The translations under genes and the position numbers were made by a program. Below, piece by piece: positions 8,012 to 24,845 of a DNA stretch of 64,000 bases (within the stretch, counting starts at the first letter, position 1; every line of letters begins with the position of its first letter). The notes beneath the pieces were generated by a model. The model worked only from the letters and a program-made list of their open reading frames with translations. It was not told the DNA's origin and ran no database searches. Source of the DNA: Selaginella moellendorffii (taxonomy: Eukaryota > Plantae > Lycopodiophyta); assembly GCF_000143415.4 (NCBI RefSeq), contig NW_003314264.1, forward strand, positions 2,613,710 to 2,677,709, in the 5' to 3' direction.

Positions 8012-10667
8012 TCAGGTTGCCGCGCAGTCTATCCAAGTCCCAGTGCTGCTCAAGATGGAATCACGGTCGCTCTCGCCAGAAACTGCCGAGACGGCCTTTC
8101 GAGCGCATTCGTCCCACGCTCTAGCCATGGCTCGGACGGTGACAGGCCGACTATAATCCAATGCCCTGGTGAGCGCCTCTCTAGCCACCGCTAAGAGCGA
8201 GTGGCTATCAAACACAACCGGGATAAGCACGAGGAGGATGGAGACAAAAACTTACTTGGAGTTTGGATCGAGATGGTCCGACATAAACAGCGGAGCTTCT
8301 GGATACGTCGGGGGGACGAACACTCGCAGCGGTGGCAAAACGGCCTGCCATTACGAAATAGTCAGTCAGGCAAAGAAACTTGGTGGAAGCCAAAGATCGT
8401 TTCTACCATGTCTGGAATGTAAGTGAAGGTGAGAACAAGTCCTTTCTTGCCTTCGGATGCTGCTTCCTCGCTCCCGTCTTCACTGATATCCACCACGGTG
8501 TCGATGAGATGGTCATTCGTGTCGCGGATCTCTTGCTCCAGGACGTAACTTATCTATGAGCACAGAAACGAGTAGAAAGAAGAAAACGACACATGAGCAT
8601 CTGTACCTCGAGCTTTTGACGCTTCCAGCCGGATATGACCTCGGGCGACTCGAGATCGGCCTCACCACCACCGTCGAGGCTGTTGGAAACACTTCCATCC
8701 GGGGAGATTACTGTCAGCGCAAGGGAATCAAGCGGACGCTTAGAGTTTGGCTTCCCTCGAGTTGATGCCAAGGCTCTAGCTCGTTCCCGGCTGTTTGTCA
8801 TGGCTGCCAAATCCTCTCCAACAGCAGCTGTACATCCAGGACCCGGTCCCGTGGCGGCGAGCCTGTCGGACAGATACACGATCGATGCCATTTCCCTCGC
8901 GCCCGCGCTGAGAGCTTTCGGAGACATCGTTCTCACCTGCGGTGTAGGCTGATAGAAACCAATGAAGGAAAAGAGTAGACTTACGATCTTGAGAAGCCTC
9001 TCCAAAGGATCGGGACCAGCCGGATCAGCAGCTTGCGCAGGACTTGCAGACAAGTCCAAGAAAGGTGACGCTGAGATGCCCGGCGAGAGTACGAGTGGAG
9101 GTGCGGTCGACTGGATCGCAGCCTTGCTGTCGGAGTCGTCCTCCTCGATCGGTGGAAGAGTCATATGCGGTGGTGTCACCGGCGAGCCAACTTTGACGTT
9201 GTGAGGAGACGACGCTTGAAAGGTCTGAGGAGATGGAACCGGCTGAGCTGATCGAGCTCTGTGCCGCTTCGCATCCACCATTCCCCGAATGCCCATCTTT
9301 GAATCCTCCAGCATTTTCAGCTGCTGTTGCTGCTGCTGCTGGAAGAGTTGGGACGCTTGCTGCTGCTGATTCGACGTGTGCATGGCATGTGGTCCAGCAT
9401 TTTGCCCCGGATTTGTAGCAGGCGGCTGCTGCTGCTGCTGCTGCTGCGGGAGATTTTTTTTCAGTGTATGCAGAATTTGCTTCTCGCAGTTGTCCACCAT
9501 TTCTAGTCCAAACTTCTTTGGAGGGTTGTCTCTCGACAGAGATAAGACTCTAATGAACTTGAGTATGTAGTTCATGTAATAATCTAGCTTTGGTAGCTGA
9601 TCTGCGGGTAGTGACTGCATGAAAGAGGTTAGTATCAGCAGCTGGAAAAGAACAGGAAGGAAAAGCTTACCCGTTTCCGTACACAAAGCTTATCCCACAC
9701 TTGTTGGAAGTGTGGCAAATGCTTGTCCTTCAAGATTTGAAGCTGAAATAGAAGAGATAAACATACATGGATTGTTTATAAAAAACCGGTTACCTTGTTC
9801 CATGCCGCCTCTTGCTCGTCGATGGTTGGATCAAGCGAAGCTGTGAAGGAAACAAAGTAAACTCGCTCGCGGTCATATAAAGAAAGAGAGAGCGTACCTG
9901 AGGGAGTTTCGGCTTTTATTTTCATCCCGAGAGGCAGACTTTGCTGCTGGTGTTGAAGCATTTGTAGCTGCTGCTGCTGGAAAGATTGAGCACCCGGCGG
10001 CAGCATGGACGCTGCTTGATGCTGGCTGGAGAGTCCAGTTAGATGCTGCTGCTGCTGCAAAAGGCTCGCGGCCTGTTGCAGACCCTGCTGTGGATTCATC
10101 CGGTAGAGCTGCTGTTGTTGCTGTTGACGAGCTTGCATCATCCTCATGGCGGCTGGGTTTTGCGTGACGCTCACTTGCTGCGCTTGCATGGTGCTGTTAC
10201 TAGAACTTTGAGCAACTTGAGCTTGGGCTTGTCTCATTTGTAACAACTGCTGCTGCTGCTGCATGATTTGGTTTTGATGTTGAGCCTGCTGAGCCACGAG
10301 TGACGAGCTCCCAGGCGCCACCTGAGCGCGATCGCTGGTCGTGTTCTTCGCGACCAGCTCCGCGGTTATCTTCCTATGATAGTCTTGCTGAAAAAAAGGG
10401 GGGGAATTTTTTGATGGATCCTCCTCAGAGGTAAAAACTTGCCTCATCCGTGGCGGTCTTGTACACCGCGTCCTCGAGGCGGGACGCGATCTGGAAGAGC
10501 TCGTTTATGCCGCCTGGCGCGTGGAATTGCTTGTGCAGCGTGCCCATCCTGCGGGCCATGAACGATCGTGTCTCAAGGAAGAAAAGCCCATAAAAAACAA
10601 TCCAGAGAAGGAACGCTTACATTCTCTTCACCATCTTCTTCCGCTCATCGCCGCTCCGCCAAGCCAT
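8012..10667 (-). CDS. MED15: Mediator subunit 15 (MED15a/NRB4-like), multi-exon
   Basis: The spliced N-terminal KIX domain reads MAWRSGDERKKMVKRIMGTLHKQF..GINELFQIASRLEDAVY..QDYHRKIT. The middle is Q-rich. The C-terminus has LEQEIRDTNDHLIDTVVDISED, LPLRVFVPPTYP and AMARAWDECAR...TGTWIDC. Confidence 0.88.
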
Positions 10668-22585: not shown

Positions 22586-22940
22586 ATCTACACGAAAATC
22601 ATGGCAAAGTATTGGCAGCAGCGAGAAAACTCTTTGATCTCATGACGCAGGCATTAACGAGCATGGTCGGAAACTCCGTCCACTTTAGAGGTAGCGCAGC
22701 GGTAGCTTCAAGTTGCAAGAGTCGGGGAGTGCTCTTGTTTCAATGGCTGGAGATTCCGGTGTGATGGCGAGGAAGCAGCACTGGGGATCACCTCAGCAAG
22801 TGGATCTGAGGAGGACCCGCGGAGTGCACGGAGCAAAGCAGCTCCTGGGAGACCAGCTCTGGAAAAGGAGTCAAGCTAGTGGACCAAACGCCGTGCTTGA
22901 TAAGCAAGTCGTCGTCAATGCTGAAGTCTTCTTACACGAC
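22586..22940 (+). pseudogene. Internally deleted tandem copy of the 3' half of PPR3
   Basis: Collinear blocks match about 21548-21606, 22144-22198, 22426-22480 and 22510-22518. Confidence 0.85.
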
Positions 22941-23091
22941 GCGGACGTCAACGCGTCCGTGCTTGACGGCAACGATTATAATACATGAAACTGGGCTACT
23001 ATAAAAACTTAGCAAATGTTAGAGCCACTCCACAGTTCAGAGTTCTTACTTGTCTTCGATTACTCGTCACCCAGTGTTCGCAGTAGCATTC

Positions 23092-23682
23092 ATGGCTTAT
23101 CACCGATCTTCGGCATTCCTTGTGCTCTTCTTGGCTTGCATGGGTCTGGGATTGTCACTGGCAGCTGCGACGAGGGAGAGTTTCACGTGCTACTGGACTC
23201 CATCTGAGAGTGGTATATGCAGAGGCAAGGCGGCGGACACGGGCATCCAGGACTGCAATACTAAGCAAGAGATAGCTAAGGTGTGTGGCGATTTCTGGAA
23301 TAAGATTCATACAGAGGGCGCCGGGAAGTTGAAGGATGGGCGATACGTGACTTGCCAAGACAACAATTGCTACTGCTTCGGCGTGACGGATGGTCCCAAG
23401 GGCAGCAAAGACAACAACTTGCACCTCTACGTGTCGATTGCGGTTCCGGGCCAGAAGTATCCGTTTGGAACCAAGCTCGAGATAAGTCAGCTCAAGGGGC
23501 TGGTGCTTCCCGGCGGTGGGCGACACAACGGGTGTGTTCGGGTGGAGGACTCGTGCACAAGCTGTAACATGGACTTCTACGTGGGGCTGAAGAGGAACTA
23601 CGATGCTATTGACGCGCAGGTCACTGGTGCCTGGGATGTTACAAGCGGTTCGAACTGCGAGATTTGGAACTATGGTAATTGA
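23092..23682 (+). CDS. Secreted Cys-rich protein with a 3D (MltA C-terminal / double-psi beta-barrel)-like domain, 196 aa, intronless
   Basis: Signal peptide (SAFLVLFLACMGLGLSLAAA), 11 Cys in the mature part, and SIAV..YPFGTKLEI...CVRVED...MDFYVG resembling the 3D motif. TATAAAA at 23000 and AATAAA at 23710. Confidence 0.72.
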   Translation: MAYHRSSAFLVLFLACMGLGLSLAAATRESFTCYWTPSESGICRGKAADTGIQDCNTKQEIAKVCGDFWNKIHTEGAGKLKDGRYVTCQDNNCYCFGVTDGPKGSKDNNLHLYVSIAVPGQKYPFGTKLEISQLKGLVLPGGGRHNGCVRVEDSCTSCNMDFYVGLKRNYDAIDAQVTGAWDVTSGSNCEIWNYGN

Positions 23683-23820
23683 GACCCTCCATGTTCTGCT
23701 GCACTCTTGAATAAAAGGCCGTGATCAAGCCTAATGGACCTTGCTGCCATGAGTAGCTCCCAAATCATCCCGGACTCTCGAGTAGCTCATCCTGTAGAAT
23801 GTTGTGCATGAAACTCGATT

Positions 23821-24845
23821 TTAGGAACTTGGTAGCTTCTCCAGAAGGAAAATGTTCTCCTTGTCATCTCGGCCGACTCTCCAGCTCTCATCCAGGTAGC
23901 TTTGGTTTGTCAGGAAAAACTAGCAAGAGCTGTTGCAAAAGGATACGTGATTTCAAGCCAGCCCGCGGGATTGAAAATGCCTAGCAGGAGGTCGTAGTTC
24001 TTCTCAAATAAGTTCATCAACTGCAAGCAACAGAATCTAGCACAACTTAGAAACTCTTTGTACCAGTGATGACGGATACCTGGTTTGGAACAATTGTCGA
24101 TGATTCATACGTGATATCTACGTGCTAATCCCTTGAATCCAAAAGACTTAACAATGAAACCAAAGAGAAGAATGCGAGCAAACCGTGGGCGAAGTGATTC
24201 GATACGAAGCCGTGATGGTAAGCGAGCCTCTAAACATTGAAAATGCAGGAACGGTAAACTCGATCGTGTTCACTGCTTTCATCTGCGTTAAGGCAGGCAT
24301 GTCGAGGAAACAAAAGAGAAACACGAAAGAAGCCATCGCTAAACCTTCGCTATGTCAATCGTTTGAGTAAAGTCTCCAAGAGAGATGAAGTCCCGAAGCC
24401 CGAGTTTAGTACGTTTCGAGCCGAGAATGGAGATGGTGCTGTAAAGAAGCTGCCAGTTACCATCCAGCTGCGACAATGAAATCGAAAAATCTTTTAGTGT
24501 TGAACAACGAGAATGTGACCTTTGGAAGATTTTCCATGGGATTCGGGCATGGATTCAATCTCTCCAGCTCCATGATAAGCTCCTCAATCGCGATTTTCTT
24601 TGGGGTCTGGACTCCAAATATCCCCCTGTTGATACCTGCGCGAAAGGAGGCATAGACACATTGTCCTAGAACAGATAGAGCAAGAACAGACCTTTTAAGT
24701 TATCCTTGATGGAAGATTTTAGATCTCGCAGCTCTGGAGCAGTGAGCGCAAGAGATTCCTCCTTGCAGGCCAATCTTGTGCTGATGCTATTGCAGCAGCG
24801 GCTTGGCCACGCCCAACAAGCACCGGCATTGATCGCTGCCGCCAT
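23821..24845 (-). CDS. FBN5: Plastid fibrillin 5 (PAP/fibrillin family), multi-exon, not visible as one ORF
   Basis: Spliced translation [83 protein letters not shown]. Confidence 0.9.

Follow-up and report, generated by a model that had tools for sequence, protein, structure and literature searches.

Does the genome of the lycophyte Selaginella moellendorffii encode a wall-cutting enzyme of bacterial type, and if so, from where was it acquired? The question is raised by a short gene at 23092-23682(+) of a 64,000-nucleotide stretch of S. moellendorffii DNA (contig NW_003314264.1, positions 2,613,710 to 2,677,709; hereafter the window), whose product, which we designated P0001, was originally predicted to be a secreted, horizontally acquired relative of MltA/3D lytic transglycosylases, a group regarded as bacterial enzymes. 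The open reading frame (ORF) is intact and intronless, with 196 codons plus a stop (ATG at 23092, TGA at 23680-23682), and its translation contains TCYW, EGAGKLKDGR, SIAVPGQKYPFGTKLEISQLKG, HNGCVRVED and MDFYVG. The ORF, its motifs and intronless state, the TATA box, the poly(A) signal, the signal-like N-terminus and the 11 cysteines of the mature part were all as claimed; a twelfth Cys lies in the signal segment. As set out below, homologs and a structural model place P0001 in the MltA/YuiC superfamily, although it lacks two formal marks of that group (a match to the Pfam model and the first catalytic-triad Asp), and the gene was most likely gained horizontally, by our reading of its sequence relatives.

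Homologs of P0001 in fungi, bacteria and lycophytes

A phmmer (HMMER) search of 1.84 billion representative proteins identified 241 homologs of P0001 at E≤1e-3; this number, together with a ratio of nonsynonymous to synonymous substitution rates (dN/dS) of 0.30-0.34 against its paralogs, argues that the ORF is not a chance one. Homologs were named by exact look-up, which gave ~35 names among the best 150 of the 241 matches, and "named matches" below refers to this set. The nearest named relatives outside Selaginella, among the matches listed, were from Zoopagomycota and had 33-38% identity across the whole mature protein. These included Entomophthora muscae KAJ9077750.1 (E-value 5.6e-27, 38% identity), and the matches to Entomophthora, Neoconidiobolus thromboides and Conidiobolus coronatus (KXN72822.1) ranged from 6e-27 to 1e-19. 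Weaker fungal matches were found in Dimargaritales (Dimargaris, Tieghemiomyces, Dispira), Mucoromycota (Spinellus fusiger, Bifiguratus adelaidae) and Glomeromycota (Geosiphon pyriformis). The only plant species among the named matches were S. moellendorffii itself and a second lycophyte, Diphasiastrum complanatum (P0033; E-value 3.2e-12, 28% identity); no seed plant, moss, other plant, alga or protist was among them. Two very large protein libraries, which include NCBI and UniRef, are the basis for this absence from other plants.

Bacterial proteins were also matched by phmmer (P0025, 3.9e-14; P0036, 1.5e-11; P0046, 3.9e-10; P0050, 9.7e-10). P0050 has a dense bacterial gene context on an Acidobacteriota metagenome-assembled genome (MAG), and the matching bacterial clusters in the Atlas were mostly Myxococcota. 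All ten bacterial proteins tested exceeded the cut-off of the Pfam 3D model (PF06725), one of them also carrying bacterial SH3 domains, and 15 of 47 family members matched this model. When the family profile was searched against the PDB, it matched YuiC (4.6e-6) and E. coli MltA (0.012). The expectation that the closest relatives would be in early-diverging fungi and myxobacteria thus held, the groups found being Zoopagomycota, Mucoromycota and Glomeromycota, Myxococcota clusters of the Atlas, and the Acidobacteriota MAG.

Other searches came back empty. P0001 matched no Pfam or NCBIfam family even at E≤10, and so the comparison with the Pfam 3D family that had been proposed as a check gave no match, neither PF06725 nor PF03562 being reached at the gathering score; the fungal and Diphasiastrum relatives tested likewise matched no Pfam or NCBIfam family. 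A phmmer search of P0001 against PDB sequences found no match, a word-indexed protein search with P0001 returned only itself and two paralogs, and the same search with the Diphasiastrum protein returned that protein alone. The pattern HNGC[VF][RK]V[DE]D matched six stretches in bacterial and archaeal genomes, none of which was confirmed. Judged from its homologs, P0001 appears to be a true but divergent 3D-domain relative that lies beyond the reach of the Pfam model.

Two further eukaryotic family members were seen outside fungi and lycophytes or in an unusual setting. The springtail Allacma fusca has a 207-residue homolog (P0019; L006:5001-6305, on the 99-kb contig CAJVCH010165075.1 of assembly GCA_910591605.1) with introns, eukaryotic neighbor genes, the catalytic Thr and both Asp residues kept, and a CxxC loop, which suggests a further transfer into a soil animal unless it reflects fungal contamination of that assembly. 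Logan contig SRR26844648_93403 (L005:237-3875) encodes a eukaryotic protein of 1212 residues (P0021) in which a mini-MltA domain (approximately residues 479-697) is accompanied by a metallophosphatase domain, EGF repeats and a weak match to a GH18 chitinase-like domain that falls below the Pfam cut-off. The pairing of GH18-like and mini-MltA domains would hint at a chitin substrate.

Predicted fold

AlphaFold produced a model of P0001 from a 128-row alignment with a pLDDT of 92 and a pTM of 0.83, compared with a pLDDT of 37 from the single sequence. In a Foldseek search of this model against the PDB the first 14 matches were all to the MltA family (E-values from 9e-6, probability 1.0). The Foldseek-independent search VIA gave a Z-score of 11.1 for E. 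coli MltA (163 residues) and for Agrobacterium MltA (entries 2pi8 and 2pnw), against 8.6 over 93 residues for YuiC and no more than 8.1 for other barrels; expansins (7.1-7.5) and kiwellin (6.6), with 82-88 residues aligned, and a barwin-like protein (5.2) ranked below. In the Atlas, TM-scores were 0.78-0.80 to clusters of Mucoromycota (0.78) and to Myxococcota 3D clusters. The MltA alignment spans both MltA domains and nearly all of the mature protein, whereas the YuiC alignment covers the barrel only; because of this difference we assign the Cys-rich stretch at residues 36-110 to the place of MltA domain B. As modeled, P0001 is a disulfide-rich "mini-MltA", a 3D-type double-psi beta-barrel with a short Cys-rich insert.

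The claim of a 3D/MltA double-psi barrel is therefore upheld from three sides, in that bacterial relatives pass PF06725, the family profile matches YuiC and MltA, and the model fits MltA best. We had also considered the expansin, EG45, kiwellin and barwin families, which share the superfold and are likewise secreted, Cys-rich and extracellular, and rejected them: P0001 has no match to DPBB_1, Barwin or KWL1 in Pfam, and its Z-scores to these folds were only 5.2-7.5. Neither the 3D motifs nor the insert is present in these proteins, which occur throughout land plants, unlike the P0001 family, which was confined to lycophytes among the named plant matches. The structural comparison proposed with the original prediction came out in favor of MltA, with expansins and kiwellin below it, and no seed-plant or kiwellin/EG45-type ortholog that would speak against that prediction was among the named matches.

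E. coli MltA and its relatives (2ae0, 2pi8, 2pnw, 7esj) share the barrel with an insert at the domain B place, and 163 of the ~170 mature residues of P0001 could be aligned, with sequence identity of only 13-17%. MltA is considerably longer (~345-365 residues versus 196), the insert of P0001 being much reduced and Cys-rich, and MltA carries a lipoprotein signal where P0001 has a putative secretory-type signal. B. subtilis YuiC/Sps (4wjt, 4wli, 4wlk), the best profile match in the PDB, is also small and secreted with little beyond the catalytic barrel; unlike P0001, it has all three Asp residues, is free of disulfides and of a Cys-rich insert, and forms a domain-swapped dimer. The 3D proteins of early-diverging fungi, which direct sequence search places in the same family, resemble P0001 in length class, hydrophobic N-terminus and the motif HNGC[VF]RVDD, and share Cys55, 93, 95, 148 and 189, as well as Cys88 in Zoopagomycota only; Cys43 and Cys65 are extra in the Selaginella proteins.

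Lycophyte copies and selection

S. moellendorffii has at least four further copies or fragments, P0002 (scaffold GL377594), P0003 (GL377719), P0004 and P0165 (GL377585). P0002 and P0003 are intronless and P0004 is a fragment; the named S. moellendorffii paralogs are 58-63% identical to P0001. Between the window gene and P0002 or P0003 the synonymous divergence (dS) is ~0.8 and dN/dS is 0.30-0.34, values that indicate an old duplication and purifying selection. An allele of the window gene in sequencing run X11 leaves the catalytic residues unchanged, and five of its eight replaced residues lie at positions 51-57 (23242-23262; GIQDCNT to A.ET.SP), a possible hypervariable surface patch.

P0165 (SELMODRAFT_413345; L004:8001-10468) is a 516-residue model that looks chimeric, i.e., a merged tandem array, in which residues 65-168 are KWL1-like, residues 232-307 are the remains of a decayed 3D-like copy, and residues 355-516 make up a complete one. 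The P0002, P0003 and P0165 loci each adjoin a receptor-like kinase with an ectodomain of the KWL1 type (kiwellin-1, itself a double-psi barrel), at L001:5421-9534 (GL377594), L002:7107-15701 (GL377719) and L004:5822-7741 (GL377585), respectively; the window copy has no such neighbor. This proximity could be coincidence, co-duplication or a defense-gene island.

The Diphasiastrum copy is a complete intronless ORF of 197 codons (L003:10001-10594, MU832886.1) in gene-poor, AT-rich DNA. The annotated model, of 228 residues, includes another two tiny exons as far as 15 kb downstream (L003:10001-25320) and is probably over-extended, since the ORF has its own stop at 10594. A decayed partial copy was seen at L003:7007-7388, on the upstream side of the intact ORF and 2.6 kb away from it.

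Active-site residues and proposed activity

Profile alignment gave the equivalences T32=T99, P119=D261, D153=D297 and D161=D308 (P0001=MltA), the YuiC counterparts being T91, D129 (the first Asp), D151 and D162; the assignment of T32 comes from alignment of the MltA stretch FTGYY to the family stretch ltyYw. T32, D153 and D161 are conserved in 105, 126 and 117 of the 128 family rows, respectively. All three are present in every complete Selaginella copy (P0001-P0003), and D153 and D161 are also found in the partial P0004 and P0165. The Thr of MltA (T99) and YuiC (T91) orients the catalytic Asp (PMC4499186), and a catalytic role has been described for the third Asp (PMC4499186, PMC10127604). 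As originally noted, P0001 keeps the second and third Asp and has replaced the first (P119/G120). Column 119 is D in all 19 bacterial rows, N in fungal rows and P in the Selaginella copies; at column 120 most fungal rows have D, as do P0002 and P0003, and the window gene has G; judged from these columns, the change of the first Asp is mostly a feature of the entire eukaryotic clade.

Our preferred reading, which we hold to be probable though well short of certain, is that P0001 is a secreted, horizontally acquired, lytic-transglycosylase-like mini-MltA that acts on peptidoglycan or chitin. Thr32 would position Asp161, which would serve as the single acid/base and cut the beta-1,4 bond after N-acetylmuramic acid (MurNAc) or N-acetylglucosamine (GlcNAc), leaving a 1,6-anhydro end, and Asp153 would bind the N-acetyl group of the -2 sugar. 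Extracellular cutting of bacterial peptidoglycan and/or chitin could then lead to antimicrobial defense or to the release of wall fragments; by analogy with known systems, such an extracellular antimicrobial or fragment-releasing role seems the most economical one. Apoplastic antibacterial defense, symbiosis and wall loosening had originally been suggested as possible roles. Candidate substrates are peptidoglycan, which is the ancestral one, and chitin; the closest relatives come from organisms with walls of chitin or chitosan. Precedents include YuiC, which turns penta-GlcNAc into 1,6-anhydro-disaccharide (PMC4499186) and thereby shows that barrels of this kind are able to act on chains of the chitin type, a secreted MltA-like enzyme of the bacterial predator Bdellovibrio (PMC10127604), and the GH25 lysozyme that Selaginella gained from bacteria (PMC4241558).

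A number of observations weigh against this reading. With respect to activity, P0001 matches no Pfam or NCBIfam family, as described above; the first Asp is missing from its 3D triad; its D153-D161 spacing is eight residues with a CxxC, versus the canonical 11; its paralog P0003 has a 7-residue insertion in the same loop; and the Diphasiastrum copy has neither the Thr nor the catalytic Asp. With the first Asp missing and the catalytic loop shortened and bearing a CxxC, the activity of P0001 is possibly altered or lost. With respect to constraint, dN/dS is ~1.1 between P0002 and P0003 and ~1.3 between the X11 allele and the window gene (nine nonsynonymous and two synonymous differences). The overall pattern is a conserved core with fast-changing surface loops, in which the counts are small and fit relaxed as well as diversifying selection. 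With respect to origin, the backbone of the eukaryotic clade in our tree (see below) is a polytomy that supports no donor, and the absence from other plants has the scope of the ~35 named matches, so that absence elsewhere is unproven. Lastly, the transcript contigs covering the gene are strand-blind and are fused with the 3' end of a convergent fibrillin gene.

The main rival keeps the same fold and origin but sees P0001 as a non-catalytic binding or loosening protein, comparable to the double-psi barrels of expansins, cerato-platanins and kiwellins, that would serve as a wall-fragment binder or as an apoplastic decoy or inhibitor; we rate this as unlikely, although it deserves to be taken seriously. 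It would account for the lost first Asp, for a D153-D161 loop that is shortened and varies among paralogs, and for the dN/dS values of recent copies and alleles, which reach or exceed 1. It would also fit the open reading frames of the Diphasiastrum copy and of Conidiobolus P0009, which both lack the catalytic Asp, and the appearance of non-catalytic barrels in the fold list at Z-scores of 5-7.5. Set against it are the presence of T32, D153 and D161 in every complete Selaginella copy and in 82-98% of family rows, and the higher ranks of MltA and YuiC, which stand well above the non-catalytic barrels. In addition, the change of the first Asp is clade-wide, and this speaks against the window gene having lost its function recently.

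We tentatively raise one extension, which we consider doubtful at present: the eukaryotic branch (early-diverging fungi, lycophytes and a springtail) may have exchanged peptidoglycan for chitin or chitosan as its substrate, so that its members would be chitin lytic transglycosylases with products ending in 1,6-anhydro-GlcNAc. Both the altered first Asp of the whole clade (D to N-D) and the YuiC precedent are compatible with such a switch and do not show it. To our knowledge, 1,6-anhydro-forming chitin lytic transglycosylase activity is not known from eukaryotes. Were it true, the fungal members would remodel their own wall, and in Selaginella the captured enzyme would act against fungi or release signals, as a new kind of "chitinase" that has no relation to GH18 and GH19.

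Phylogeny and origin

The tree was built with IQ-TREE from 83 rows and 208 columns under LG+C20+F+G4, with a bacterial outgroup drawn from Pfam matches, the one Acidobacteriota MAG and Atlas taxonomy, and with no named bacterial genome loci in it. Bacterial 3D proteins were separated from all eukaryotic sequences with a split support of 100/99. The three Selaginella copies formed one clade (100/100) on a long stem inside the eukaryotic clade, and Diphasiastrum was joined to Neoconidiobolus at 94/87 on a long branch. A single lycophyte clade was not rejected by the approximately unbiased (AU) test (p 0.685), the constrained tree being 10 log units better, and a fast constrained search placed this lycophyte clade among Zoopagomycota with weak support. 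Cys88 is confined to Zoopagomycota and the lycophytes (Selaginella, Diphasiastrum).

We favor transfer from a fungus to lycophytes because there are many fungal paralogs in three phyla, the named plant matches come from only two genera, both lycophytes, and the plant copies are intronless. The transfer may have occurred once, before the split between Selaginella and Lycopodiales, or twice; that is, the gene would have been captured from a Zoopagomycota-like fungus either by an ancestor of the lycophytes or by Selaginella and Diphasiastrum independently. The captured gene would then have acquired the base composition of its host, duplicated in Selaginella and come under purifying selection. Horizontal acquisition of P0001 is most likely on these sequence comparisons, its direction, donor and date being what we infer.

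A direct bacterial origin of the lycophyte genes, apart from the fungal genes and with the likeness between the two due to parallel secretory adaptation, would be in keeping with the unsettled position of Selaginella inside the eukaryotic clade, and a transfer of a lysozyme gene from bacteria to Selaginella is documented (PMC4241558). We consider it improbable in view of the 100/99 split, which puts the lycophytes with the other eukaryotes; of lycophyte proteins that have HNGC in place of HDGC, lack an Asp at column 119 and share Cys88 with Zoopagomycota; and of fungal matches that are better by more than 10 orders of magnitude in E-value. Vertical descent of an old eukaryotic family, lost except in early-diverging fungi, lycophytes and some arthropods, seems quite improbable as well. 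The eukaryotic sequences do form one clade, the AU test leaves lycophyte monophyly standing, and names are known for only part of the homolog list; vertical descent would nevertheless require very many independent losses (in all other plants, Dikarya and most animals), and it fits poorly with the intronless plant copies (the window gene, P0002, P0003 and the Diphasiastrum copy) and with the lack of any other plant, alga or protist among the named matches.

Predicted location, transcription and genomic setting

The N-terminus of P0001 is charged at its start (R5), has its hydrophobic core at residues 8-23 with a Kyte-Doolittle mean of up to 2.8, and ends in AAA|T. The model places a low-confidence helix at residues 8-18, and the N-termini of homologs are likewise hydrophobic. 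Residues 1-26 thus have the shape of a signal peptide, from which we infer secretion. A role in plastids, in which the protein would remodel the peptidoglycan layer that plastids of early land plants probably retain, and would do so during chloroplast division instead of acting in the apoplast, has in its favor a peptidoglycan lytic transglycosylase fold with catalytic residues kept, and lycophytes retain plastid peptidoglycan-synthesis genes. It is very improbable, as the N-terminus resembles a secretory signal peptide and not a transit peptide, the eleven Cys residues point to an oxidizing compartment, the nearest relatives are fungal, and no moss homolog was among the named matches; mosses have plastid peptidoglycan.

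Contigs from ten sequencing studies contain the gene stretch, and these include DNA-type runs with allelic variants. The minus-strand fibrillin gene downstream allowed us to recognize RNA: its seven CT..AC splice joints (47-62 nt) were present only in runs X1, X6 and X7 and were missing in X11, the only DNA-type run examined, and so we regard these three runs as RNA. Contigs of X1, X6 and X7, from three studies, span 23023-23899 without a joint; therefore the window gene is transcribed and unspliced. The X1 contig starts (23023) 16 nt past the TATA box, and transcription is probably from the plus strand, judged from the promoter and poly(A) signals on it.

P0001 is a called gene on GL377568.1, a 4.34-Mb scaffold of S. 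moellendorffii assembly GCA_000143415.2, where its neighbors are three pentatricopeptide repeat (PPR) genes, one F-box gene and the convergent PAP_fibrillin gene; its GC content (0.54) and third-position GC content (0.66) equal those of the flanking PPR genes. That the ORF is a contaminant or assembly artifact, as might be supposed from its intronless state and fungal nearest relatives outside Selaginella, is effectively refuted by its place among PPR, F-box and fibrillin genes on this scaffold, its recovery in ten studies' contigs including DNA-type runs with allelic variants, a base composition equal to that of its neighbors, and paralogs on four other scaffolds that adjoin plant receptor kinases. 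The features of the gene are listed in Table 1.

Table 1. Features of the P0001 gene and its immediate surroundings, in window coordinates
Feature	Position	Strand	Basis
TATA-like box TATAAAAA	23000-23007	+	92 nt 5' of ATG; read from sequence
Probable 5' untranslated region	23023-23091	+	X1 RNA-type contig starts at 23023; X1 depth nil at 22707-23009
Coding sequence, MltA/3D-like protein P0001	23092-23682	+	ORF, called gene, joint-free RNA contigs, homologs, model
Signal-peptide-like segment, residues 1-26 (AAA, then T27)	23092-23169	+	Hydropathy, model, homolog N-termini
Thr32 codon (MltA T99 / YuiC T91)	23185-23187	+	T in 105/128 family rows
Cys-rich insert, residues 36-110, between first barrel strand and 3D core	23197-23421	+	Model alignments, Cys pattern
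P119-G120 codons, site of first 3D Asp (MltA D261)	23446-23451	+	Alignment columns 119/120
Asp153 codon, second 3D Asp (MltA D297 / YuiC D151)	23548-23550	+	D in 126/128 rows
Asp161 codon, third/catalytic Asp (MltA D308 / YuiC D162)	23572-23574	+	D in 117/128 rows
AATAAA polyadenylation-type signal	23710-23715	+	28 nt 3' of stop; read from sequence
Convergent PAP_fibrillin gene (PF04755), neighbor	23821-24845	-	Called gene; seven CT..AC joints, 47-62 nt

Some additional features were seen in the contigs around the gene. The fibrillin gene has alternative joints at 24124-24184 and 24130-24183, and its RNA contigs extend into the 3D-like gene, which makes a 3' overlap of the two convergent transcripts probable. 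At the intergenic position 23791, RNA run X6 and also DNA run X11 carry an insertion of 9 nt relative to the window, CACAGATAG, probably an indel between alleles. In contigs of X1, X7 and X11 a joint jumps back by 651 (22650 to 22000) where the upstream PPR gene has its 3' end; it may mark a tandem duplication or a departure in structure from the reference.

Comparison with known systems and significance

A known parallel is the GH25 muramidase of Selaginella, aphids and fungi, which like the P0001 gene is intronless, expressed and integrated among host genes. In Selaginella this lysozyme was gained directly from bacteria and represents an antibacterial wall-cutting family of bacterial origin that has been fixed and vertically kept (PMC4241558). 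GH25 is a TIM-barrel hydrolase, in contrast to the lytic transglycosylase barrel of P0001, and the route of P0001 was apparently via fungi and not directly from bacteria. Within their own family, the Selaginella proteins also depart from their fungal relatives: they have P-D or P-G where the fungal proteins have N-D in place of the first Asp, and their D-to-D spacing is 8 residues, with a CxxC, against the canonical 11 in fungi.

A literature search found no paper on 3D-domain or MltA-type proteins in plants or fungi, or naming these Selaginella genes, and none of the fungal relatives is characterized in the literature searched. The gain of a wall-degrading enzyme by transfer is known; what is new here is the enzyme family, the apparent fungal route and the spread among soil eukaryotes. 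The family is one of putatively secreted, Cys-rich mini-MltA proteins outside Pfam coverage, with a patchy distribution over three fungal phyla, two lycophyte orders and a springtail. The finding points to transfer from fungus to plant rather than from bacterium to plant. P0001 would be a second, structurally unrelated wall-cutting enzyme among the transferred antibacterial genes of Selaginella, after the GH25 lysozyme (PMC4241558). If P0001 is active, it would give a plant a peptidoglycan- or chitin-cleaving chemistry distinct from that of lysozymes and chitinases, and its products, 1,6-anhydro-muropeptides or anhydro-chito-oligomers, would be potential immune signals.

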